A stretch of DNA of 63,187 nucleotides, filler included, from Pelomyxa schiedti (GCA_020536535.1; 19 parts of 19 records of this genome joined end to end with filler, not necessarily neighbours in it); one strand, 5' to 3'; positions 30,893-45,927 are shown, counted from the first letter of the whole stretch. Made by a program: numbers and translations. Notes: a model not told the origin generated them from the sequence alone.

Positions 30893-31436
30893 NNNNNNNN
30901 NNNNNNNNNNNNNNNNNNNNNNNNNNNNNNNNNNNNTTAATTAATTAANNNNNNNNNNNNNNNNNNNNNNNNNNNNNNNNNNNNNNNNNNNNTTACTGTA
31001 TCAGTGCGATGCCAGCAGTCAATTGCCACTGTTCACAGACTCAGCCGGCGAACGTAACCCCATAGAGGCCCAGTGTTGGTCGCGCTATCGCCTCGTGCAG
31101 GGCCCTTGTGCCCATTGGTGAGACATCTGACCCTTAGGCGTCGTCATTGTGCTTTCCACTTCCCCCAGTCTCTGCCCTGTTCCAGATAGAGTGGCGATCA
31201 GCTGGAGTTTGCCTTGGTTATTTTTTTTTTTTTTGGCGTGGGTCCTGTTCTACTGGTTGGAATCCTCAAATCAGGCCTTCCTCCCCTTTGGGAATTCCCA
31301 CTGCCCTTCGTTGCACTTGTGATCCCACAGCAACCTTCCCCTTCAGCGGTATCAGCCAACTCACTGCTGTGCGTATTGTTGCCCCTGTGGTAGTTCACTG
31401 TCTGCTGCATGCTGTCGTCCTGCAGTGCCTCCCCTG

Positions 31437-31935
31437 CCTCCTTCTATCAAGGGGCAGTGTCCTCATCCTGCCATCTCCTCCTTCTTTCGAGGGGCTGACG
31501 AGGAGCAAGATTCCTTCCTCCCGCCTCTCCAGCTGTGCCTCCTCCTTATATCAAGGAGTGGTGTGTGTCCACCTCCTTCTATCAATCAAGGAGCTACCTT
31601 CCATCCTCCTTCTATCGAGGATCAGTTTCCTCCTACTTCCTCTTTCAACAAAGAGCAATGTCCTTATCCTGGTTCCTCCTTCTATCAAGGATCAGTTTTC
31701 TCCTCACACCTCCCCCTTCTATCGGGGAGTACTATCCTTGTCCTCCTTCTTCTTCTTCGATGAGCAATGTCGGAATCCCCCTCCTCCTTCTATCGAGGAG
31801 CCACCTTCCATCCTCCTTCTGTCGAGGATTGGTTTCTTCAATCAGTTTCCTCCTGCTTCCTCCTTCTATTGAGGGCAGTATCCTCCCACTTCTGTCAAGG
31901 AGCAAAACCCTTGTCTGGCCTCCTTCTCAAGGAGC
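31437..31935. repeat. Array of about 14 palindromic CCTCCTTCTATCAAGGAG-like units with variable spacers
   Basis: Unit starts at about 31437, 31477, 31541, 31572, 31605, 31636, 31675, 31712, 31742, 31783, 31812, 31859, 31885, 31919. Core CTCCTT-n5-AAGGAG. Spacing does not preserve frame. Confidence 0.85.
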
Positions 31936-32504
31936 CAGCACCTCCTGCAATCATCGTTTTTCCATTGGCCACAGGCCTGGCGCCTTCTCTCATGGTGTGG
32001 TCATGTCCGGAAGTGGATGTTGGAGTTAGTGAGGAGATGCAGAAGTTGCAGAAATGGTTTGGGAGGGAATATGTTGTTGAGTAAGGGGGTGTTGTTCCCT
32101 AAGTTCATCAGTTGTATACAGGACCACGAATTGCTTTGAGTAAATTAATTTAAAAAAGCAAACAAAAATTATGGTAGAAAGATACATCAGAATGAGACCA
32201 CTCTGAAAGAGTGGGACAACCTGTCTTTCGAATAAGTAGGAAGTCCTTGTCATGATTCACAACTTCCTCATTAAAAAAAACAACAACACTAAACCTCTGT
32301 GTCCTTAGGAACCTTATGTCCACTTGCTGTGGAGATTGTTACTGCTGCTTTTTGTTGTCCACCAAACACCTCCACTGATTTCCTAGAGTGCCGAGAGACA
32401 CTTTGGCCGAACCGGACCACAATCCAACAACGTGTGCTGTTCCGATGTCCTGTATGTAATGTATTTTGATTTTCTATCCGGCTCGATCAAGACACAGATC
32501 TATC

Positions 32505-32614
32505 GGCGGCGAAAATTGTGGTGCGAAAACTTTCATCACTGATCGTGAGACGCCAAAGTTTTCAGCAACGAAAGTTTTCGGCGACGAATGTTTTACAGAA
32601 CGAAGGTTTCTCAA
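32505..32614. repeat. 16-bp tandem repeat x4 plus related motifs
   Basis: CGCCAAAGTTTTCAGC AACGAAAGTTTTCGGC GACGAATGTTTTACAG AACGAAGGTTTCTCAA, preceded by GGCGGCGAAAATT and TGCGAAAACTTT. Confidence 0.7.
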
Positions 32615-33949
32615 CATAGGGTAGTCTATGGTGCCTACCACACTTGCCATCCCACCATCACCTCACTCCATGAGCAGCATCTTCTCCACTCCTTTGGTAT
32701 TTGCTTCCCACGGTGCTGTGCCTACTGCTGCTCTTGGTTCCCGTGCTGTTGAATGGGCTTATATCAGCACACTTACTCATCAGTTGCACCTGTGTTCCTG
32801 TGGCCGCCGTTTGTATCCTTACCAACCTGTCACCCTCACTTCTGCTCTCCCCATGGTGTTCTCATTGCACTGCTGCTCACACCTCCAGTGCCACCCTCCT
32901 GGCTGCTAGCCAAGTGCTGTAGTTGGTGTAGTACGCTGGTTGAAAATCAGTGGTCCTCAGTGTTGTATTGAATGTGGTACCAACAATTTCTGACTCGACC
33001 CATCTCCATTGGTGAGACACAGCCGATTTTTACTGGCCCATGATTCCGATTGCTTACTGAACTGTCCCCAGCTGAGTAGAGACACCATTGTCATATCACC
33101 TCCTTACCGCCTTCTAAGGTTCCAGCCATCTCTGGTTGCCTTGTGTCCTGTTTGGTGAAATCTAAGTCTGTCGATCGGAGCAGACCTCCTGTTGCCAGTG
33201 AGCTACCTGGCCCTGCCTTGCTGTCTAGGTCAACAGTCTCCTCTTCCCCTGGAGTCTTCTGGGCGGCTGACATCTTCAAATGTGCTCCCTTGAGAGCCAC
33301 TGCAGTTGATCCTGCTGTGCTGTGTCCACTGTAGTATTTGCTGGCACTGCACCACTCGAGGACAACATCGCTACGTGTTTGTCCATACTGACGAGGGGAT
33401 GATACCTTCGTTTTCCGACTCCTCGCGTTTGTTGGGCACACTCTGTTGCGTTTTTACTGTGGGCTCCCCTTGCGAATTGTTGCGTTTTCCATCGATCACC
33501 GTTTACATCTCCTCCACAAGCACGAGGCTCGCCTTCGCCTTCGTTTTCGTTTCGTTTTCGTTTTTCCTTTCGTTTTTCGCTTTGTGCTAGTCAATGACTC
33601 GCCACAGATAGTGAAGAGTCTTTCGCAGCAGTCTGCAGATTAACACAAAGAAAGAATAACATCCGGACCAGATAAAAGCTTGTTCGCTGCTAAAGTTGTT
33701 TGGCACAGCCATCCAGTGACTTCGCGTCGCTGTTCTAATCACTGATGGATTTCTGGGAAAACTACCGCGAATCTGTTGGGACCCTGAGGGAGATTCAGGC
33801 GACACCTAGAACTGATTCTAGCGCCTTTATCAGGCGGGAACAACACCATCGTAGTTGAGCAAGCAAAAGCTAAAGTAATAAACAATAAACTCTTGTGTTT
33901 GTATTCGGGCTTCTTTCTCCCTTACACAAGTAAAACAACAACCATCAAC

Positions 33950-35338
33950 ACCCCGGCACACCTCACAGTGTGGTGGTCACTATCCAAACCCAATCTACCT
34001 CGCCACACTATCGTTCAAATTTCATTTCGACACGGCCTCAGTAACGTTGCAGTCGCAATTCTGCCGCCGGTGGAACTGGCGTGCCGGTGGTTGCAAGTGA
34101 TTCCCTCCCCATTTCTAACGCTACCCTCACTCTCACTCAGCAACCACACCACAACCATAGGTTCGGGAGCCAGTGTACCTTCAAGCACGCGTGCGTGGTA
34201 TGCGGCAGCCCCGGGCACACCGCGCGGCAGGCCCACGGCGGCCTCGCCGGCCCCGCCCGCAGAGCCATGCTCACTCCCGCCGACGGCGGCCTGTTTCAGC
34301 CGCACCAGGGGCCCCTGGTCGACTCCCCCTCGGACACTACCAGCACCACAACCAGCGCCGAGTGGGACGCCGCTGCCGAGAGGGACAAGGCTGAGCAAGG
34401 GGAGGGGGAGAGGGAGAGGGAGAAGGACAGGGCGCGGGGCCTCGGGGACTTTGGCGCGTCGGTGGGGAGGCTGCGGGCCACTGGGAACGAGCACTTCAGG
34501 GAGGGGCGGTACGACGAGGCGCTGAGGTGCTACAACGCCGCGGTGTCGCGCCTGCGGGCCGTGGTCCCGCACCCCGAGGCCTACCAGCACTCATGCCAAT
34601 TGTCCGCTACTACTGCCGCTGCCGCCACTGCAACTGACTCCTCTGACTGTGCTTGTGGCGGCGACGTCGGCGCCGTAGCCGTCGGTGTCGGCGTCGGCGA
34701 TTCTACCGAGTCCCGTGCCCAGACTGGGAATGATTCTCGCTCCGAATCGCCGCGGACTGGCTGCCCTACGCCGCCACCGCCTGCGACAAGCACCGCGGAA
34801 CGCGTGAGTGACGGTGAGATGGAGATGGAGAGCGAGGGAACATCGGCGGAACATGAGCCTGTCGTGGAGTATGGCGCCATTTCACAGGCTTCTGTGTCCG
34901 TTCTGCTGTGTAACGCAGCTGCATGCTGCATTCAGTTGGGCGATCCAACAAAAGCCGCATTGTACGCTGGAAGGGCCATTGTATATGATGAATCAAACAT
35001 CAAGGCCTGGTACAGACGTGCCTGCGCCTGTATGTGTTTTTTTTTGCCGTTCTCTCTCTCTACACTGTGTGCTTTCACACAAACTCAAAAAAGATGAACA
35101 ACTGGGGAAGTACACTGAGGCGGAAAACGACTTGATGCACATACTAACAGAAGAACCACACAATTTGGCAGCACAGGCCAAACTGAGGCAGCTTCAGGAA
35201 CAATTTCATCAACGAGAGGCTACACTGTGTAGAAATATGCTATGTATTCCGGAACCGACACCCACATTGACAACAGCAAATCAAAGTGACAACCAATGTG
35301 ACAATTTGGTTGGGCACAGCATTTTTGATGATGAGTGA
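33950..35338 (+). CDS. TPR protein (FKBP/CyP40-type TPR) with N-terminal Cys/His zinc finger; start uncertain
   Basis: FCRRWNW...CTFKHACVVCGSPGH; LRATGNEHFREGRYDEALRCYNAAV; LLCNAAACCIQLG..AALYAGRAIVYDESNIKAWYRRACA; QLGKYTEAENDLMHILTEEPHN. Confidence 0.75.
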
Positions 35339-35387
35339 ATGAATGTAGAGGAAAACAATATCATATTAATATTCACGTTTTCTTGTC

Positions 35388-36404
35388 TCAAGTCCTAAAA
35401 CGGGCCTCCCTTCCTCTGTTGGCTGTAGCCTCCCTCTCTTTGTCCCTTTCTCTATCCCGCTCACGGTCTCTCTCACTGTCCCTGATTCTATTGCTCCGCG
35501 AAGGTGAGTCACGCTGTCTCATAACATCCCTGTCCCTCTCTCTGTTGTCCCTTCTGAAGTCTCTTTCACGGTTATCTCTGTCTCTATCCCCCCTTTCTCT
35601 GTCACGGTTATCTCTGTGCCTGAATTCTCTTCCATGTGGCTCATTTGATGACCTAGCGGCATCAGCAGCTCGAAGCTCGGCGGCATCAGCAATTGTAAGA
35701 CTTACATCAAGAAAATCACCAACTTCAAAATGCAATTCGTCAAGAGTCTTGTTCTCATCCTCGGAATGGCCTATTCCCCATGTGCTTCCAACCTTTTTTC
35801 AATAAGGTTATGTTGAATGTAATGAATAGGATTAGAGCGGTGTGTTTTTGTTTAGATGGTAAAAGTGACAATATTTTACCTCCTTGATTACATTTCGGCC
35901 CATTTTATCCGGATAAACAAATGCAAACCCTATTTTTGCCTCACGTCTGCGTGCCACTTCCCGTACTTCTTTTATCAACTCAGTCAATTCGCGGAGTGTT
36001 GCATCACGCCTAATAACAGTGTCAATTTCATTATCACTGCTCTATGAATCCAGTAACCATGTGTGAATCTGCAATTCGTCCTGCAGAGGCTCCTTGCCTC
36101 TCACCTGGTATTCCTCGATGGGGTGGTGGCCCCCTGCACGAGTGAAAACCCTCAATAACAAAGGGCAAGTCTATACCACCAAAGTAAACAAAACAAAGGC
36201 GTAGAGCTCGAAGTATTTAAAAAAAAAAACGAACAAAAGGCACGCGAATGACACACGAACCTTCTCGCGATCTACGTCGCCCGGTTTGAGGATCTTTCTC
36301 GACGGCACCGCAACAGAGGCTTCCGAAGTGACCGTTGACGTAGGGGCTGTAGAAGATGTAACAGCGGCACTACCACCACTCGCCAACACCGGATCTGTTT
36401 TCAT
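35388..36404 (-). CDS. SAP18: Sin3-associated protein SAP18 with RD/RS-rich C-terminal tail
   Basis: Exons give VDREK..., VFTRAGGHHPIEEYQVRGKEP..ELQIHTW, ARRREAKIGFAFVYPD, DENKTLDELHFEVGDFLDVSL. Confidence 0.92.
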
Positions 36405-36617
36405 CTTCGTGGAGCCTTTTTTTTCCTGTGATTTCAAGAAAGAGAAAATTCGCCTTGGCATGTTAGGCAAGGGATGCCAACAAAAAAAAAGGACCCTAGT
36501 ACTACATACAGGTCGGTGTGATTTTGGATACACACAAACACACAGAAAGAAAAGGAGAACAGGCAAGTTTTTTTGTTTTTGTTTTTTTACTCTGGGGAAT
36601 ATGTAACAAAGGGAGAT

Positions 36618-37120
36618 TTAGTGTCCGTGTTTCTTGTGTGCCTTCTTGGCGGCTTTCTTGGCATCGTGGGCATCGATCTTCTTCATCTTTCCCTTCTTGC
36701 TCATGTAGTATCCTGGTGGGCATCCAACAGCTATTAAAAGAAGTACGTGAGATTCAAGAAACGAGGAAGTAATAAAACACCCCTCCGCACACAGCCCCCA
36801 CCACAAAGTCAGAAAAGTACAGGGGGAGGACATACTGTTAAGGCCCATGTGCATTCCGGGAGGGGGCATGCCCATTCCCATGCCAGGTGGTGGCATCATT
36901 CCGGGCATCATGCCTGGTGGTGGCATTCCCATGCCCATGCCGGGTGGCGGCATCATTCCTGGCATCATGCCTGGTGGCGGCATGCTTCCCATCATCCCGG
37001 GTGGTGGCATTCCGGGGTATCCCATTGGTTGACCTGGCATCATGCCGGGCATGGGCTGGCCTGGCATCATTCCTGGCATTGGTTGGCCGGGCATCATTCC
37101 GGGTTGTCCAGGGTAACCTT
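36618..37120 (-). CDS. Small Pro/Gly/Met-rich protein with basic C-terminus
   Basis: PGQPMPGMM and PPPGM repeats. Final exon GCPPGYYMSKKGKMKKIDAHDAKKAAKKAHKKHGH*. Start codon not resolved. Confidence 0.65.
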
Positions 37121-37696
37121 GTTATTACACTGCGTAAGAAACGATGTTTGCTGCGTTGGTGTCATCACCGCGATTAATACGTGTTGTTATTACAAAAGCA
37201 AAAACATCGCACGAGGACCGCGAATAGGAGGAGGAAGAGGAAACGAAACAAGCGTTTTGGTTTCTTTTAGGGCGATACAACAAAAAACACAAAATTTCGT
37301 AGCCTACCGTAAGACATTGTTACTGTCGGTCTTGTTGGTTGTGGGTTTTTTGTTTAAAATGAATTTTTTTTCGGGCCCTTTTTGTGCTGTTGCTGTTACT
37401 AAACCTCCATTCTCAGGAATAGCGGTTTGTCAAACTTGATGACAAGGTTAGCCAACTGAGAGAAATAGCAGAAAACCAAAAAAGCCCCGGTTGTGCTGCC
37501 TCAGTATCCCGCGGTCCGCCGCTCCGTTCGGGGGAATCCCAACTTGGCAAGGTCTACGGCCCAAAAGGGATGCAAGGTGAATCTGAAACCGGCCTTTCGT
37601 GTGAAATCACACGGCTACGACTTTTTAAATCGAAAAAAACACCCGGCATGACACAAACTCATAAACACGACGCGACAGAAGCAATACAACACAAAG

Positions 37697-39349
37697 ATGT
37701 CTCTAGAGGCAAGCACTACTAGTGATGCGCAGCCGAAATGTTGGACTTGTGGGACGACTATACCCAAGTTGGATCACACTGTCCACAAGCAATGCAGCCG
37801 GTAGGATCCTCATTTTCTTTCCCTCTTTTTTAAAACACATTGGCAGAAGTTGTAATATAGTAGTGTTAGGATTATGTTTAACGAAAACTTTTTTTTTTTT
37901 CAAGGTGCAAGCTTGCAGTATTTTGTAGTGGGGTGTGCTTTAAGAAGGGATGGAAAGACCATAAGAAGCATTGCAATATTGTTGCTATACCAATTGACAG
38001 GGAACCAGAGTATGCTATTATGAATGAAAACTGTGATTAATAAAAGGAAATATATTTCTACTGTTGCTAACCACAACCAAAGTGCACACACCAGAGCGGC
38101 GCAAAGCAGACAGATGCAACAGGAAACTGTTGCAGCTTCTGTGCCCAAGCCACAAATTATTCACGCCAAGACCAACCCCTCTGCACCCCTTCCAGAGGGT
38201 TTTGTCTCTGCTGATACAATTACATCAGAGAATATGCCTTCAACCACCACATCTTCCTCACTCCCAGAGGAACTCACAACACCCTCTCCTACTGTCTCAA
38301 GCACCACTACCTCTTCCTCAGAGGGTTCCCAAAGAATTCTGCCAGCAACTGGAAAAGTTAATATAACTGGCGATTCTCCAACTGCCATCAAAGATCAGGC
38401 ACGTCTACAAGCCATGATTGGCTCTGGACGTGGCAGCAACATACACACCATTGCAGGAAAAACCTTGGTAGATGCCACATTGACTTCCACCGAGATTCCA
38501 GAGGTCAGAATTCCTTCAAAGCCTTAATTGTTTTACATCTGTGGTAGGGCGCTGCACTATGCTTTATCAATTGTACAGAATGCCAATATAGAATTGAGGC
38601 ACCTTCTGTGAAAATTTTCCTACAAGGCTGTGTTGGACTTAAGTTGCACATTGTGGGGAAAGTCATAACGAGCACTGTAGAGATCTTTCACTGTGAAGTA
38701 TGCAAAACCTAGAAGCAAGCTCGAATCTAACACCCTTCAAACTACAGCGTATAAAGGCTGTAATGAGTGGTGAAGTACACACAGTACAAGCCGATATGAA
38801 TCGGGACCTTGAAATAGAATTCCCTGATCAAGCCTCTTTCCGAATGATTGTTTGGGCAGGTTGCTACAACTTTAAGATTAAGGTTTGTTCCTCCATTTTG
38901 TTACAGTTTCTGACAATATCATATCAGGTCGGAGAAATGGAGCTGATTACCGGGTTTGATGTAATGAAAGGACACTACAAAAATATCCGAGAAGATATCA
39001 GTCAATTCAAAGTACCCCCATTATCTCTGCCAAATGCCCTCTCACTGAACTACAGGTGCACTTCGTGCAAAACAAGCTTATAGCTGAACGTGTTGTGCGA
39101 CTCGACAATGGCTTCCCTACTACCAAAAGGGAAGCGGACGAGTTTGACAGGTTTTTCAATGAACCGAAGCACCTATCTAGATTTTTTTAACACCCACGCA
39201 GACGCCAAGAAGAAAATATCCAAAGACGGGCCAAGGAGATGGGAATTACAATCAAAAGGAAACAACCCACTGGACCAAAGGTCGGGCGCAACGAGCCTTG
39301 TCCTTGTGGTTCCGGACAGAAGTACAAGTCCTGCTGCCTTTCTGGATAA
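37697..39349 (+). CDS. zf-MYND + low-complexity region + CAP_C/cofactor-C-like beta-helix + C-terminal SEC-C motif; multi-exon
   Basis: CWTC..QCSR|[23 protein letters not shown]; [37 protein letters not shown]|..TVQADM..IVWAG; [20 protein letters not shown]|; [20 protein letters not shown]. Confidence 0.8.
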
Positions 39350-39890
39350 CCAAGTCTGAAAGTTCAATCACCAATGTAACCAGCAAGTACAACGGCCTCA
39401 AGAGTGCCATTCAGGCATTTTTCTCCTCACCAGTTTCTGTGTGAGTTGAGGAAGCCTTGTGTACTGTTGGAGAGCTGGTTGCTTGGTGCTTATTCCTGTG
39501 AAATAATAAGATGAAAGTTTTTTTACAGCCTTGGTTTTATCTTTTCCCGTCGTGGACAAAAACCCTAAAGGACGTTTTTTTTGGTTTCCACAAACTCCCT
39601 TTACAGTAACCCCCTTCGCACCCATAATAGATCTGCGGTCCGATTAGCGTTTCCCGGAAAATCAAGTGCAGGAACCTACATCAACGCGAGAAACGACGTA
39701 ACCAGAAAAGCGGTGCCTCTTTGTGGTGCCACCTCCCAAACCAACCAAAAGCAACAAAAAAATTTGAAAGCACAGCCCTGTCAAACACCAACCAGTTTTC
39801 TTTGGACTTCTTTTTTTTTCCCCTCCCACCTGCCTCCCTTTTTTTTGGTTCTGATTGGTGCAGGGGAGTAGGCACACCTAGGAGAAGTGA

Positions 39891-42800
39891 ATGTTTTTAT
39901 CGAGGAGACATGGGTTATTGTCCAGTTCGGAGCCACTTCCACCACCCGAGTACTTGCCACCTCAGAAAGTATGTACTATTTTCGTTCATTGTCCCTTCTT
40001 TGTTGGTTTTTTTTTCCCTCACCTATCTGTCAAATGTTTATTTTTGTATTTGTAGGCAGTAGTGCCGGAGCAGGTCAACATTAGAGTCAATGGCAGACCT
40101 TTGAGAGTTGGTTATGGATGGACAATACTAAGGGCCTGCAAGGAAAATGGAATTCACATTCCTACACTCTGTCATCACCCAAGTGTTCCTCCTTTCGGGA
40201 AATGTGGAGTTTGTGTTGTTCATGTGGAGAGGGGTCACTCTTCAACATCTTTGCAATCCTCTTCTGGCGGCTCAACCCCGATTATCCCCTTGCTAACCCC
40301 ACCAAAAAGATCGCATCCACACCACTTCACTTCCCTGCTCCATCAAAAACCACAGTTTGTCATGTCATGCAAAACTCTTGTAGAGGAGGGAATGGTAATA
40401 ACTACCAACTCTGCTGCTGTTGTATATCAGTCTACTACCAATCTTGCAGAATTCTTGGGTACAAGAAGATTAGAAGGAATGCTGCCTGCCCCAGAAATTG
40501 AAGATTTACTGACGTATACCAGGGTTTGTTATCATGCAAAACTATCATTTCTCAAATGTAAAAAAAAAAAAAAAAAAAGAAATCTAGAGCAGTTAATGAC
40601 CAGCAGCAAGATTACGCAGTAGTGCGTGATCAGAGTTTATGCTGTCTATGTACACGTTGTGTTCGTGTTTGCTCAGAAATCCAGAACATGAACGTCCTCA
40701 GAATTGTATTCACTTCTCCTCTCAGTCCCATTATGTTTGAAAATGAGCTTCCTTTGCACGCAACCAGCTGCATAACATGTGGACAGTGTACCTTAGTTTG
40801 TCCTACAGGTGCTGTTTCTGAGAGATCTGATTGTGCTGTTGTTGAGAGGGAACTCGAAATGGCTTGTGCACTGGCCAAGTCAGGCAAAGAAAAGAAGATA
40901 TTCATACTTCAGACAGCACCCTCGAGCAGAGTATCTATTGGAGAGCTGATGGGTGAGGAGCCTGGAACAGATTGCACCTCGAAGCTCGTAGAAGCAGCTC
41001 ATACCATAGGCTTTGATCTGGTTTTTGACACACAATTTGCTGCTGATACCTGTGCCACTCATGAGGCTATTGAGTTGGTAGAGAGAGTGAATGCTGGAGG
41101 GCCGTTTCCTCTTTTTACCTCATGCTGTCCTGGTTGGGTGAAGTTGGTTGAAAATGTAACCTCTCCTTCTCTCTTTCGCTGATTTAATAGCAAACAGAAA
41201 TACCCGCACTTGAGGCCATTACTGTCAAAAGGAAGGTCGCCAATGATGATGCTAGGATCCATGATTAGAATGATGATGAAAAGGGACAATATACCAAGAG
41301 AAAAATATTTTGTGGTTGCACTCATGCCCTGTCTTGCTAAGAAAGAAGAAATAACACGACCGGAACTTAAGGATCCCGAGTGAGTTATTTCTGAAGTCTA
41401 TTCTTCCTTATGCTTTATGCAGAGGGAATTCTGATGTAGATGTAGTCCTCACTGTGAGAGAAATGGCTGTACTACTTAAAAAACGGATGGGATCTATGGG
41501 ATGGGGCAATTTAGGCTCTGGAAATGGTTCTTTTGATGAGCCATTTAATTTATCCAGTGGTGGTGGTACTTTATTTGCTGCTAGTGGTGGTGTTACAGTA
41601 TGTACCGTCATCTACTTTATTGGATATTTGAAAACTTCTTTTCCCTCTAAAAAAGGAAGCTTCTCTCCGTGTTGCATATTCATACCTCTCAAAGGAGAAA
41701 CTAACACCAAGTGTGTCGTCAGCCTTTGAAGAATGTCGCAGTGCTACAAAGCCAGATTCATGGTTGGAAACCAAGGTCGATGTCACTCCTGGGCATCGAC
41801 TTCACTCAATGCTCGATGTTGCAATTGTGAGTGGCACGAAAAAGATCCAAGAGTTTCTTTCTTCTGAGGGCTTGAATGACCCAGAGTCTGCAACTGAAAG
41901 GGGTGGTCACCGAAAGCACTTCGTAGAGTGCATGTGCTGCCCAGGGGGGTGCATTGGAGGTGGAGGGCAGCCAAAGTCTTTGGATGAACACATTGTTGAA
42001 AAAAGACGTTCTGCAATTTACGTTCTTGATAAGATAGCTTCAGAGAGGTCTCCATACCAAATGCAGAACAAGTTTCTGCATCATCACATTGGAGGGGTTA
42101 TGTCAGAAAAAGGGCGTGCCCTACTTGAATATGACCATCCAATGTTTTTGTCACCTAGAACAACAATGAACTTTGATGATTCTGCTTCAACAACTTGTGA
42201 AGCCTCGGCTCGTCTTTGCATCCTCTATGGCTCACAAGGAGGACTTACAGCATCTTATGCCAGAAAATTGCATTCCTTCTTCGAAAACAATTTAAATGAA
42301 CAGATTGTCATACATTCAATGGACAGGCGAGTAAGAGAACAGACACTTTTCATATGCTGACAATACTATAGGTTCCCCCTCAAGCTGCTGAACACTTGTC
42401 TCACACTAATTTTCCTTACTTCCACTTGGGCCACTGAAGAAAAATTGATGCCGTGCAACGCACAAAAATTCTTTGAATATTTGTGCAGTGTCCCATTGAA
42501 TCAACACCACAAAAAACTTGCTGGAACACGCTTTGCTGTTCTTGGATTTGGTTCAACCAAATACCACGAGGTCTGTCTGTTAGTGGAAAAGACGTTCCTG
42601 TGATAATATTTTTAGTTTTGTGGATTTGCTGTCCAATTACACACGATGCTGAGGAGATTGGGTGCTTCCCCGTTTATGGATCTTGTAAAAATCGACGTTG
42701 AACGACCTGACAAGTATTCCTCTCCCTCTAACATGCTAACTAAAAATCGCTTCCAAAAGAGGTGCCAAGCCCTTTAACCGTTGGATGCAAAGTATTACTT

Positions 42801-45800
42801 CCAGTCTCATCTCAACAAACCTTCCATCACCAAGAGTTTTATTGATTCCCTCTGTTTCTCCTGGTTTCTTCCAAATCCCCTCACTTTTTTGCTTACTCAA
42901 ACGGTCAGCAAGGCATAAAGGGGCAACACTGGTGTCTCCAGCCGGTTGCCATACTGTGACAGTAGCGAAGGTAGCGGAATACAAAACCTTGTCAAGTGCC
43001 ACAGAACACTATTTCTATGTTGAATTCACGACAGAGAAGAACTTTCTTGAGTAAAAACTCTGCTCCTTGTATCAAGCCCACTTACTGTTCCCAGTCCCGC
43101 ACCTGGTGACTACTTATATGTAATGCCCTCAAATCCAAGAGCAGAAGTAGAGCAATTCCTGAACTCTTTTTACCCAGGAATGAGCAATGTACCAATTACA
43201 ATTCTCTCTCTTTCGGGTAATACTCTCCCAGTCTGTCGAGAGATTCACAAATTATAGGAAAACCACTTGAGAGTATACCTTCACACCTCACTGTTTCACA
43301 ATTATTTGAGCAGTTTGTTGATCTTTATGGGCGACCTTCCAAAGATTTTGTTGAGCGTCTTCTTACAGCATCTGGAGAAGAAACCCAGTATGTAAAAAGC
43401 ATATTAAATATTCATCTGGTCTCCTTCTAGAATATTCACTTCCCAACCAATAGTCCTCTGGTTGGTGTGACCTTTGACCATGAGAGTTTTGTTCAGTGGG
43501 CAAAAGAACAGACTTACCTTGGGATACTCAAACAGTTTAAAAGCAACCTTGTCTCACTTGAAGTACTCCTTACAATGATTCCCACTATTTTGCCTCGGTG
43601 TTACACACCCATTCACCTCGATCCACCAAAACCCCATACTATAGCCATTTGCGTCAAAGTCATAGAGGATGGATTGTGTTCTAGATTCCTTGTAAATTCA
43701 AGTACACTGTCCGATATGTTTGTTGTACAATCTCCTTATTCACGTCTAGAAAGAGGGGACAAAATAAATGTTTATGTGACTGGATGCGAACTTCCACAGC
43801 CAATCTTCTTCCAAGACAACAAATTGCATCCCAGTCCAAAAGCACTTGCACCAGAACAAGCCTCAATGAAAGCCGTTCCCAATTTGAACCCTCCTCTTCC
43901 AATTCCAGTGAAACCAGTGGGCAGGTATCTTCGCATTTTTTCTCCAATTTCTGAAGGACAATTGTAGTGCCTCCTCTTCACCAAGAGAATCGAGTGCCAC
44001 ACCAAGAGAATCGAGTGCCACACCAAGAGAGTCAAGTACCACTCCTCGTGATGACATATTCCCACTGTCCCGTTCCGTTCAAAAGCTCACGTTTTCTAGT
44101 ATGGGTCGTGTGCCTGTGGGNNNNNNNNNNNNNNNNNNNNNNNNNNNNNNNNNNNNNNNNNNNNNNNNNNNNNNNNNNNNNNNNNNNNNNNNNNNNNNNN
44201 NNNNNNNNNNNNNNNNNNNNCACCAAGAGAATCGAGTGCCACACCAAGAGAGTCAAGTACCACTCCTCGTGATGACATATTCCCACTGTCCCGTTCCGTT
44301 CAAAAGCTCACGTTTTCTAGTATGGGTCGTGTGCCTGTGGGACTTCCAGTGAAGGAATCTTTTCACCTTACCAATAATCTGAAAGACAAGGCGAGATTTT
44401 CCATAGAGGATGTTCTCACAGCCAAATTTTCCCTCAGTTTTTATCCTCCAAATGGAGTGATAAAGTCACATTTCAGTGTTGACATACAAGCAACCCTGAC
44501 AGCCTTCTGCACTACTGTAATATCATCGGAGACCCACATTATAGCAGAATTCTCAGGGAAAACTAGCCAAACTGCTTTTCCCATTTTGGCAGAGACAAAG
44601 CTTTCTGTCAAACTGGACTTCGATGAAATCCACCGTATAGATCAAGTTGGAAAGGGGGGCTATGGGACTGTCTTCAAATCAGAATGGAGAGGACAAGATG
44701 TTGCCGTCAAGTTGTTGCACAACCAGGATCCTCTCCCTGAAGAGAAACGTGACTTTGAGAGGGAGTGTGCTGTGCTGGAGGAATTACGCAGCCCATATAT
44801 TGTAGCATTTGTTGGTTTCTGCCTCAATCCCTTGTGTATAGTCACAGAGTTCTTGCCACTCGGCAGTTTGAGCAAATATATATTTGGAAATCCTCCCTCT
44901 AGCCTCAGTGTGGAGTACAAACAAAAAGCAATGCTCAATGCTGCAACTGGAATGACATTTTTGCACAAAAGGTTATTCAAGATTTCACTGAGGATTGCAC
45001 TAACTGACACTTTTTAACTTGCAGTGGAATTATGCACAGAGATCTTAAACCGGACAACATACTTGTTGTCTCACTGGACTCTAAGCAAAGTGTTGTATGT
45101 AAATTGACCGATTTTGGTACCACTCGCGAATGCACGGAGCAAACAAAGAGGCTAACACAGGGGATAGGAAGTTTGTTTGCCTGTTCATACTATCGTCATC
45201 TAACTTATTGTTGCAGCACCTACTTTCATGTCCCCTGAAGTGTACCAGGGGGGGCAGTACTCCACACCCACTGATGTTTTCTCGTTTGCAGTACTTCTAT
45301 ATGAAGTTTTTTCTGGCATTCAGTCCTACTCAGGACCAGAATTCAGTCAGGACTGGAGTGAGTTCCCTCCGTTTTCGTCTTCCTGGTTCTAACTTCATAC
45401 AGTGATTCCGCAATATGTGATAGCTGGAAAAAGGCTGGCTGTCCCCCCGTCAGTACCGGAACGAATTGCAAATTTAATTAAAGTATGCTGGGCACAAGAC
45501 CCGCAAAAAAGACCATGTGAGCCGATCCTTCACATTTCTAATCCTAACCTCTTCCAAACAGCCTTCTCTATCATTCAGATAGAACTTGATTGCATAGCCA
45601 ACAACAAACCCCGGCACCTCTCCCTTTCACTATCACCACCCCCACATCCAACACAACAACAACCACCCGCACAATTACAACAAGAACAAGAACGAGAAAA
45701 CAGTAGCAGTAACAACAATGAACCTCACTACAACCGGCACAAACACCGCAGACCAACAGTGTCATCCTCCCCTGAAAGAACCCTAAAGGACCTCTCTTGA
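39891..45800 (+). CDS. [FeFe]-hydrogenase - flavodoxin - FAD-binding - Ig/MSP-like - TKL protein kinase fusion (about 20 exons)
   Basis: Frame stays open through manually placed introns: 39969-40055, 40514-40587, 41156-41197, 41380-41422, 41598-41655, 42327-42371 (GC-AG), 42571-42615, 42714-42759, 43051-43094, about 43217-43259, 43392-43430, 43925-43967 and four kinase introns. There is no stop between hydrogenase and kinase. Single stop at 45798-45800. Confidence 0.82.
40056..42160 (+). other. hydA: Domain: [FeFe]-hydrogenase (F-clusters + H-domain + small-subunit region)
   Basis: 2Fe-2S: TLCHH..GKCGVC..SCKT. 2x4Fe-4S: CCLCTRCVRVC and CITCGQCTLVCP. H-cluster motifs FTSCCPGW, MPCLAKKEE, ECMCCPGGCIGGGGQP. 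Also QTAPSSRVSIGE, DTQFAAD, SGGVTEASLR. Confidence 0.97.
42200..43800 (+). other. Domains: flavodoxin (FMN) + CPR/CysJ/NOS-type FAD-binding domain, without NAD(P) domain
   Basis: ILYGSQGGLTASYARKL, FLTSTW, PCNAQKFFEYL, RFAVLGFGSTKYHEFCGFA; PGDYLYVMPSN, FVDLYGRPSKDFVERL, IPTILPRCYT, GLCSRFL, GDKINVYV. Confidence 0.9.
44322..45620 (+). other. Domains: Ig/MSP-like pre-kinase domain + TKL-type kinase (Entamoeba TMK-like)
   Basis: AETKLSVKLDFDEI, VGKGGYGTV, VAVK, ERE, HRDLKPDN, DFG, GIGTPTFMSPE, DVFSF, CWAQDPQKRP. All catalytic residues present. Confidence 0.95.
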
Positions 45801-45927
45801 GGAGGACTTCATTATGTACAAAAAAAANNNNNNNNNNNNNNNNNNNNNNNNNNNNNNNNNNNNNNNNNNNNTTAATTAATTAANNNNNNNNNNNNNNNNN
45901 NNNNNNNNNNNNNNNNNNNNNNNNNNN

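Follow-up and report, generated by a model that had tools for sequence, protein, structure and literature searches.

The locus and the gene model

The DNA analysed here is a stretch of 63,187 nucleotides, filler included (the window), made of joined records of one genome, and this work concerns a gene on its plus strand, at 39891-45800, that couples an [FeFe]-hydrogenase and a flavin module to a protein kinase. Window positions 30993-45827 are identical in sequence to contig JAHLWZ010001164.1 (14,835 nt) of assembly GCA_020536535.1. The initial annotation, made from the sequence alone, had suggested a Pelomyxa-like amoeba, and the organism is indeed Pelomyxa schiedti, which hosts a methanogen (PMC10579272). 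GenBank gives two models for 39891-45800, a hydrogenase labelled "partial" that runs to 44120 and a kinase of 429 amino acids (aa) at 44322-45800, and the split falls exactly at the sole run of N in the region (100 N, 44121-44220). Once this gap is collapsed, a single frame of 1596 aa with one terminal stop is obtained, distributed over 19 exons and 18 introns of 41-87 nt (Table 1). Residues 1-1174 of the spliced model are GenBank KAH3732501.1 (Pelo_16670); the last 429 residues match the GenBank kinase model in length and span, and the two GenBank models overlap by MGRVPVG. The fused gene is Pelo_16670 plus the kinase model placed by GenBank after the gap. A paralog, Pelo_9301 (KAH3758890.1, contig JAHLWZ010000730.1), is 74% identical over the full length; no gap interrupts its gene, and its annotation gives a single protein of 1593 aa.

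Splicing by hand in the initial annotation had placed the features that it named, but had missed the GC-AG intron at 42327-42371 and two in-frame introns, at 42864-42908 and 43702-43749. The latter two (45 and 48 nt) are free of stops and are read as coding if overlooked; the residues that the three introns would contribute are missing from the paralog and from the relatives. GC-AG introns make up 1.59% of the introns of the P. schiedti genome (PMC8887013). The intron at 43925-43967, located between the FAD domain and the linker, was said to keep the frame and it does, while its retention would give an in-frame TAG at 43965-43967. The GenBank model also splices this intron and reads the linker up to the gap, since its protein equals the first 1174 residues. 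In Pelo_9301 the corresponding intron has the same place and phase, a length of 42 nt and an unrelated sequence, and would give a TAA if retained.

Table 1. Features of the fused hydrogenase-kinase gene (window coordinates)
Feature	Position	Strand	Evidence or detail
Coding region of the fused gene	39891-45800	+	Spliced model, TGA stop; paralog with 19 exons and introns at matching places
Exons 1-10	39891-39968, 40056-40523, 40580-41155, 41198-41379, 41423-41597, 41656-42326, 42372-42570, 42616-42713, 42760-42863, 42909-43050	+	
Exons 11-19	43095-43216, 43258-43387, 43454-43701, 43750-43924, 43968-44120 joined to 44342-44971, 45025-45170, 45217-45357, 45403-45516, 45562-45800	+	Last exon ends with TGA
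2Fe-2S domain (Fer2_4, NuoG-like) with Pro/Ser-rich insert	40056-40523	+	Pfam Fer2_4, E=9e-17; Cys ligands conserved in the family
Two ferredoxin-type 4Fe-4S motifs, CxxCxxCxxxC (40637-40672, 40766-40804)	40580-40804	+	Pfam Fer4/Fer4_9/Fer4_7; Cys invariant in the family
H-cluster domain, four exons	40898-41990	+	Pfam Fe_hyd_lg_C in three exon pieces; motifs conserved in the family
H-cluster motifs, all intact	P1 TSCCPGW 41117-41137; P2 MPCLAKKEE 41324-41350; P3 ECMCCPGGCIGGGGQP 41926-41973	+	
Clade-specific SPMMM	41237-41251	+	
Flavodoxin-like (FMN) domain, three exons, including GC-AG intron 42327-42371	42217-42763	+	Weak Pfam Flavodoxin_1 in one exon
Connecting domain and FAD-binding barrel, ending at GDKINVYVTGCELPQP	42764-43802	+	Pfam FAD_binding_1 in two exon pieces
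FAD motifs	RCYTPIH 43596-43616; GLCSRFL 43671-43691	+	
Poorly conserved tail after the FAD barrel, then Ser/Thr/Pro-rich linker with a 21-bp repeat, three copies (43979-44042, PRESSAT units)	43803-44055	+	Tandem repeat finder
Junction intron, 43 nt, GT-AG, phase 2 (CAG/GTATCT...TTGTAG/T)	43925-43967	+	Sequence; removed in the GenBank model too
Assembly artefact (100 N and second copy of 44000-44120)	44121-44341	none	Exact 121-nt identity; k=121; paralog colinear with the collapsed sequence
ASH/PapD/MSP-type beta-sandwich, aa 1153 to ~1266, spanning the gap	44056-44618	+	AlphaFold2 pLDDT 91.9; Foldseek; 32-sequence alignment
TKL-type kinase domain, five exons	44619-45566	+	Pfam PK_Tyr_Ser-Thr/Pkinase in four exon pieces
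Kinase motifs	GKGGYG 44649-44666; VAVK 44700-44711; HRDLKPDN 45035-45058; DFG 45110-45118; SPE 45231-45239; KRPSF at the domain end	+	
Low-complexity C-terminal tail and stop codon	45567-45800	+	Translation; poorly conserved between the paralogs (pN 0.46)

The hydrogenase half

Domains were searched with Pfam on the separate exon pieces of the gene. The N-terminal 2Fe-2S domain is followed by a stretch that does not contain the His/Cys ligands of a third 4Fe-4S cluster, and between the CxxC pair and the fourth Cys of this domain lies a Pro/Ser-rich insert (aa ~85-124; window 40230-40350). The insert is in frame in both P. schiedti paralogs, although with different sequence, and is missing from all other family members. 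It was considered as an intron and discarded: the sole canonical in-frame candidate, 40224-40355, leaves a loop too short, and both paralogs are in frame.

The solved structures closest to the H-domain are HydA1 of the HydABC complex (8a6t, E=3e-81) and then CpI (3c8y). The proton-transfer residues are kept and conserved in the clade, within TSCC, HEAIELVERV and RSPMMM. These we take to correspond to the proton path of CpI (the relay Cys in P1, two Glu and the Arg in ..EAxEL..R.., and the Ser before PQQ/PMM), a mapping assumed from the motifs. With P1, P2 and P3 intact, the core, as the initial annotation had proposed, is predicted to be of the catalytic group-A type.

The flavin module and the loss of the NAD(P)H site

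The diflavin module that had been assigned to the gene is present as far as its flavodoxin and FAD barrel are concerned, but the NAD(P)H-binding domain is missing: no match to PF00175 was found with Pfam in the gene or in any member of its clade. The Flavodoxin_1 and FAD_binding_1 matches, weak on the exon pieces of the gene, are strong in intron-free relatives. The flavodoxin domain aligns to the FMN domains of NOS reductase and CPR, and its motifs GSQ, TSTW..LMPxNA and GFGSxxY are conserved in the family. The alignment to both reductases stops where the FAD barrel ends, and about 70 poorly conserved residues follow before the ASH domain. Both PF00175 and PF02256 are present in eukaryotic long hydrogenases that are more distantly related.

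In the tree of the hydrogenases, the proteins devoid of the NAD domain all fall in one clade, which has full support and a long branch and is composed of the kinase fusions, the P. schiedti protein Pelo_9198, two Mastigella eilhardi transcripts and Mastigamoeba hydrogenases 5 and 9. The clade is marked in sequence by SPMMM, GGVTEA, a 2-residue insert in the FMN loop and RCYTP. Cofactor ligands and catalytic residues are kept throughout it with one exception, P0253. This protein (Logan assembly, 1397 aa) has an altered P2 hydrogenase motif (SSCISKKEE) together with a degenerate kinase, in which VHGSLHP stands for HRDLKP and GYS for DFG and the Lys of VAxK is lost, and the two activities may have been lost together. 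Since the NAD(P)H-binding domain was lost across the clade, a non-metabolic role gains strength.

Linker, ASH domain and kinase

The Ser/Thr/Pro-rich linker contains TPR[DE]S units that recur in the paralog Pelo_9301. It leads to a domain of about 115 residues that the initial annotation had called Ig-like and that AlphaFold2 and Foldseek define as a predicted ASH/MSP-type sandwich; the predicted local distance difference test score (pLDDT) is listed in Table 1. The best Foldseek matches of the modelled sandwich are the ASH domain of OCRL1 (3qbt), the PapD-like domain of CEP192 (6fvi), HYDIN (2e6j) and MSP (1msp), with probability 1.00 and template-modelling (TM) scores of ~0.65-0.72, and relatives give weak Pfam ASH/Cep192_D6 matches.

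The kinase core is complete, comprising GxGxxG, VAVK, the αC Glu (FERE), HRDLKPDN, DFG, SPE and the final Arg, and these motifs are conserved in the family. With the 84%-identical kinase of the paralog as query, the nearest solved kinases are MLK4, CTR1, TAK1, MLK1, Roco4, DLK and LRRK2. The complete motif set and the TKL kinases found as closest solved matches point to an intact kinase of the TKL type, in line with what had been claimed for it. In other proteins the ASH-kinase cassette is preceded by H-type lectin, laminin-G, ankyrin, EGF, periplasmic-binding-protein-like and cyclase modules.

Conservation and origin of the fusion

The same architecture was found in other organisms. P0151 (1759 aa) is encoded in full by a single uninterrupted genomic open reading frame (ORF) of 5280 nt, on a 26.8-kb eukaryotic metagenome scaffold where its neighbours are eukaryotic genes (SCAMP, DAG kinase, SPRY). 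P0155 (1692 aa) and P0157 (1602 aa) are complete, each on a contig of about the size of the gene; two samples yielded the P0155 contig in identical form, 5' end included. The family also comprises, in full or in part, P0244, P0158, P0001, P0002, P0008, P0156 and P0159. Mastigamoeba balamuthi g192 (P0249, m51a1_g192, 1741 aa) has the hydrogenase-flavodoxin-FAD-ASH-kinase order in one gene model. In this model the kinase is cut (Pfam positions 41-210 only) and joined to an MFS transporter, so that two neighbouring genes were probably merged.

A tree of the ASH and kinase domains groups the 11 hydrogenase-fused kinases in one clade (Shimodaira-Hasegawa-like approximate likelihood ratio test, SH-aLRT, 96) among 45 other ASH-TKL kinases, and the inner grouping of this clade matches that of the hydrogenase-part tree. 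Because the trees of the two halves agree, a single old fusion is indicated: according to the phylogenies it arose once and is kept in Pelomyxa (two paralogs), probably in Mastigamoeba (one flawed gene model) and in several uncultured relatives. Between the paralogs the proportion of synonymous differences (pS) is ~0.75, which is saturated, and that of non-synonymous differences (pN) ranges from 0.08 to 0.18 over the Fe-S/H-domain, flavodoxin, FAD, ASH and kinase regions and ~0.5 in the tails. By this measure both halves are under purifying selection.

Other proteins have different C-termini. The M. eilhardi EukProt transcripts P0243 and P0162, and P0248 (1691-1799 aa), contain hydrogenase, flavodoxin, FAD and an ASH-like domain followed by ~600 residues that matched no Pfam family, with a weak hint of a beta-propeller in P0248. 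In Anaeramoeba flamelloides and A. ignava the 'iron hydrogenase' entries of NCBI (P0263-P0272) are hydrogenase-flavodoxin proteins; WD40 and beta-propeller families appear in their precomputed Pfam lists, according to which this is another lineage that joins the hydrogenase to a protein-interaction module.

One gene across an assembly gap

The two GenBank models meet at a gap whose flanks, 44000-44120 and 44221-44341, are identical over 121 nt with 0 mismatches. The P. schiedti genome was derived from amplified single cells, and was assembled by SPAdes with k-mers up to 121 and subsequently scaffolded by P_RNA_scaffolder, which joins contigs via RNA-seq read pairs (PMC8887013). The flanks thus overlap by exactly the size of the largest SPAdes k-mer, which identifies the gap as a scaffolding artefact, its 100 N serving as placeholder. 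Removal of 44121-44341 brings GTGCCTGTGGG directly before ACTTCCAGTGAAGGAA and the reading frame is kept. The paralogous locus has the same base count across the gap spot and is colinear with the collapsed sequence. Hence, the exact k-mer overlap and the paralog of the same length indicate that both sides of the gap are continuous and in frame. The 21-bp repeat located near the gap (43979-44042) cannot shift the frame, its unit being a multiple of three.

The position of the kinase start can be examined in the light of the ASH fold. When the exon 44223-44970 was searched against 1.8 billion representative proteins, the best matches aligned from query residue ~20, and the homology of the database kinases starts 14 residues ahead of the Met at 44322. 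According to the 32-sequence alignment and the predicted fold, strand A of the ASH domain is made of these upstream residues (FPLxVS..LxF). A protein starting at ATG 44322, which is a copy of 44101, would begin inside the ASH fold since strand A precedes that Met, and no other in-frame ATG exists between the acceptor at 43967 and the Met at 44322. Pelo_9301 has a Gly in place of this Met. Both paralogous loci have a SEC-C/zf-MYND gene upstream, which indicates that the Pelo_16670 and Pelo_9301 loci are a segmental duplication.

The arrangement annotated in GenBank, in which a hydrogenase-flavoprotein ends at the TAG of a retained 43925-43967 intron or soon after and a separate kinase of 429 aa starts at ATG 44322, would account for the two listed models, the "partial" hydrogenase and the kinase, and for the existence of that ATG. 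Moreover, the 51-codon open frame upstream of the ATG is by itself only modest evidence for one gene; its codon score (12.0 against 13.0 +/- 5.1 for the exons) agrees with a coding stretch, but the test is a weak one. However, the split coincides exactly with the artificial gap, the starting Met would be within the ASH fold and is replaced in a paralog annotated as one protein, intron-free relatives encode the whole protein in one ORF, and the trees of the hydrogenase and kinase halves are congruent; two separate genes are therefore very improbable. A junction created as a chimera during single-cell whole-genome amplification or assembly, or a locus that is a decaying pseudogene, deserves even less credit and is close to negligible. 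The amplified single cells and a contig with a scaffolding gap could have produced a chimera, but the junction (43800-44000) lies inside the left contig, away from the gap, and is found again at the independent paralogous locus with the same upstream neighbour and in other organisms; a pseudogene is at odds with 1596 codons devoid of frame breaks and a pN far below pS.

Some observations speak against a single gene. No P. schiedti transcript-derived fragment across the FAD-linker-ASH junction was found among protein fragments of 220-700 aa with the paralog as query; the splicing of 43925-43967 is deduced from gene models, the paralog and intron-free relatives; and the RNA-based scaffold join implies only co-transcription of both sides of the gap. 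An exact look-up of ORF 44322-45014 in public assemblies found nothing. The overlap at the gap, the gap-free paralog, the intron-free ORFs and the congruent trees nevertheless bear out the fusion described in the initial annotation as real and conserved, and we consider it very likely that 39891-45800 encodes one fused protein, predicted to be cytosolic.

A second placeholder of fixed length, 100 N, is present in the same assembly (stretch L005, 710-809). Further gaps of the P. schiedti assembly could possibly be closed likewise, and gaps of this kind may have led to other genes being annotated in pieces.

A proposed role as input module of a kinase

By its motifs and predicted folds the protein is a single polypeptide composed of a catalytic-looking hydrogenase core, an Fe-S relay, FMN and FAD sites and no pyridine-nucleotide site, an ASH domain and an active-looking kinase. 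Considering that: (i) the sole known reductase substrate site has been lost; (ii) the hydrogenase-flavin unit is joined to two signalling outputs, the kinase and, in Pelo_9198, a RasGEF; (iii) the ASH-kinase cassette sits behind many domains of ligand-binding type, and (iv) the catalytic and cofactor motifs are all kept, we propose that the hydrogenase-flavin half is the input module of the kinase. In the model, the electron chain would end in the flavins, devoid of a pyridine-nucleotide partner, and the ASH-kinase unit would be a cassette combined in this lineage with a wide variety of N-terminal domains. H2 acting on the H-cluster, and cellular oxidants acting on the flavins, would determine the redox state of the input module, which a conformational change would then pass on to the kinase; the kinase would in turn phosphorylate downstream targets. 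As the fermentation of the amoeba depends on a methanogen to keep H2 low, such a kinase would couple metabolism or behaviour to H2 pressure. Taken as a whole, a fused protein whose hydrogenase-flavin half serves as input module is the explanation that we favour, with odds slightly better than even; that redox or H2 input controls the output of the kinase, as the architecture suggests, is taken separately at best an even bet.

Several points weigh against it. The H-domain looks like that of a working enzyme rather than of bacterial sensory HydS, to judge from the catalytic residues kept; AlphaFold and sequence data carry no information on allostery; and a non-pyridine electron acceptor could make the protein purely metabolic. 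In addition, organelle targeting signals are found on the P. schiedti maturases HydE/F/G, whereas a cytosolic location is predicted for Pelo_16670 and Pelo_9301 (PMC8887013), and because of this separation the H-cluster might stay incomplete.

The metabolic possibility can be formulated as a real fusion that does no sensing, or in which information runs in the opposite direction: the hydrogenase would hand its electrons to an acceptor different from NAD(P)H (e.g. a quinone, another flavoprotein or O2), and the kinase would regulate or localise the enzyme, e.g. by autophosphorylation of the Ser/Thr-rich linkers upon other signals. It is consistent with the retention of all the group A catalytic and proton-path residues, with the Ser/Thr-rich linkers and repeated TPR[DE]S units common to both paralogs, and with the literature, in which these genes are counted as cytosolic H2-evolving enzymes (PMC10579272). 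But with its NAD(P)H domain the protein has lost the one donor site known for this class of enzymes, the union of the same hydrogenase-flavin unit to RasGEF in Pelo_9198 fits an input module better than an enzyme in need of a kinase of its own, and the ASH-kinase cassette lies otherwise behind ligand-binding-type domains; we regard a metabolic enzyme as rather unlikely. The fusion could also be sensory but not for H2, if the cytosolic H-domain never received its 2Fe subcluster and the Fe-S/flavin chain reported on oxygen, oxidative stress or iron-sulfur status. Flavins devoid of an NAD(P)H domain react readily with O2, which would favour such a sensor, and oxygen is the main hazard for this anaerobe. 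The situation would resemble that of the hydrogenase-like Nar1/NARF proteins, which have lost hydrogenase chemistry, and the distinct predicted locations of the maturases and of both paralogs mentioned above point the same way. Nonetheless, the H-cluster motifs, the bridging Cys, Lys and Met and the proton-relay Cys and Glu are strictly conserved across a deep clade, unexpected for an empty 2Fe site, and P0253, with its degenerate P2 and dead kinase, suggests that both activities are kept or lost together; a sensor of this other kind is improbable.

The input-module proposal can be extended, with due caution, to a eukaryotic H2 sensor made of one protein, in which H2 oxidation at the H-cluster would reduce FMN/FAD, devoid of an NAD(P)H outlet, and the state of the flavins would switch the TKL kinase. 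Pelomyxa, and free-living Archamoebae in general, would thus tune fermentation, motility or the handling of symbionts to the H2 level set by their methanogens, and sister proteins would drive Ras via RasGEF. This broader scheme is speculative and less likely than not.

Other features of the contig

An ORF of 338 codons at 34081-35097 (+) is located in a region with a G+C content of 63-66%, against ~44% for the rest of the contig, and matches TPR repeats (Pfam TPR_2, E=2e-8); no gene is annotated there. At 36618-37103 (-) a Met/Pro/Gly-rich repeat protein, with units like MMPGQPMPG derived from tandem repeats of 27, 30 and 57 nt, overlaps an annotated gene of 134 aa and matched no Pfam family.

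Significance and comparison with known systems

To our knowledge no eukaryote is known to sense H2, and, as far as we know, bacterial sensory [FeFe]-hydrogenases are understood in outline only. The conserved family described here is a candidate for the monitoring of H2 or redox state in an anaerobic amoeba that depends on H2-consuming methanogens. What is new is an overlooked, conserved kinase fusion; the sequences are public and the hydrogenase part is already described as a long hydrogenase. The annotation of JAHLWZ010001164.1 in GenBank is corrected as well, one gene having been split in two at an artificial gap. If the input-module proposal is true, Pelo_9198 would be a second signalling fusion, with RasGEF, on the same hydrogenase-flavin input unit.

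Pelo_16670, Pelo_9301 and Pelo_9198 are listed in the P. schiedti papers as hydrogenases of energy metabolism (PMC8887013, PMC10579272), and the CysJ domain of long hydrogenases is said to hold an NADH pocket, which has been used to argue for NADH reoxidation (PMC10579272). At least these three 'long NADH-dependent hydrogenases' of P. schiedti have no NAD(P)H domain and, because of this loss, should not count as NADH-oxidising, so that the published cytosolic redox scheme of the organism (PMC10579272) may need revising. The initial annotation knew of no described example of a hydrogenase-kinase fusion. No paper was found that mentions one: neither kinase nor RasGEF is mentioned in the P. schiedti papers, the comparison of Archamoebae organelles or the Mastigamoeba genome paper, and wider literature searches found no such fusion. 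However, the sequences were already public, as KAH3758890.1, deposited as one '[FeFe]-hydrogenase' of 1593 aa, and as the Mastigamoeba model.

Long hydrogenases consist of a NuoG-like N-terminus, HydA and a C-terminal CysJ/CPR-like diflavin reductase (PMC10579272). The eukaryotic ones, from Trichomonas, Stygiella, Pygsuia and Pelomyxa, have the same order of 2Fe-2S, two 4Fe-4S, group-A H-domain, flavodoxin and FAD domains as the fusion (PMC10579272), with clear homology over ~1100 residues. The fusion differs from them in that the NAD(P)H-binding domain PF00175 and the small-subunit-like PF02256 are absent and an ASH domain and a TKL kinase are in their place. The closest named relative of the hydrogenase half is Pelo_9198 (P0161, KAH3758981.1, 'Fe-hydrogenase 2'; contig JAHLWZ010000721.1, stretch L004 3001-9542), with 62% identity over the Fe-S/H-domain and 45% over flavodoxin/FAD. 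It has no NAD(P)H domain either, and carries RasGEF_N and RasGEF, known here from the gene model alone, where the fusion has ASH and kinase.

In the ASH-TKL kinases of Archamoebae, e.g. Mastigamoeba m51a1_g2964 and Mastigella TRINITY_DN5525, the same C-terminal ASH/MSP and TKL cassette is found at 35-40% identity. Their N-termini are lectin, laminin-G, ankyrin, EGF, PBP or cyclase modules or nothing, whereas the hydrogenase-flavin unit is restricted to one clade.

The bacterial group C sensory [FeFe]-hydrogenases of the HydS type, with PAS, histidine-kinase and HATPase domains (PMC11406978), likewise place a hydrogenase and a signalling output in one polypeptide. The proposed logic, from H2 to a signal, would be the same. 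In HydS the active site is altered and the proton-relay Cys is lost, while in the H-domain of the fusion the catalytic group-A residues are retained, proton-relay Cys and Met residues among them. No PAS domain was found in the exon pieces of the fused gene with Pfam; a flavodoxin-FAD relay is interposed instead, and the output is a eukaryotic TKL kinase of Ser/Thr type and not a His kinase. Hence, the fusion is not a member of group C and is of independent origin, but it may work like a sensory hydrogenase.

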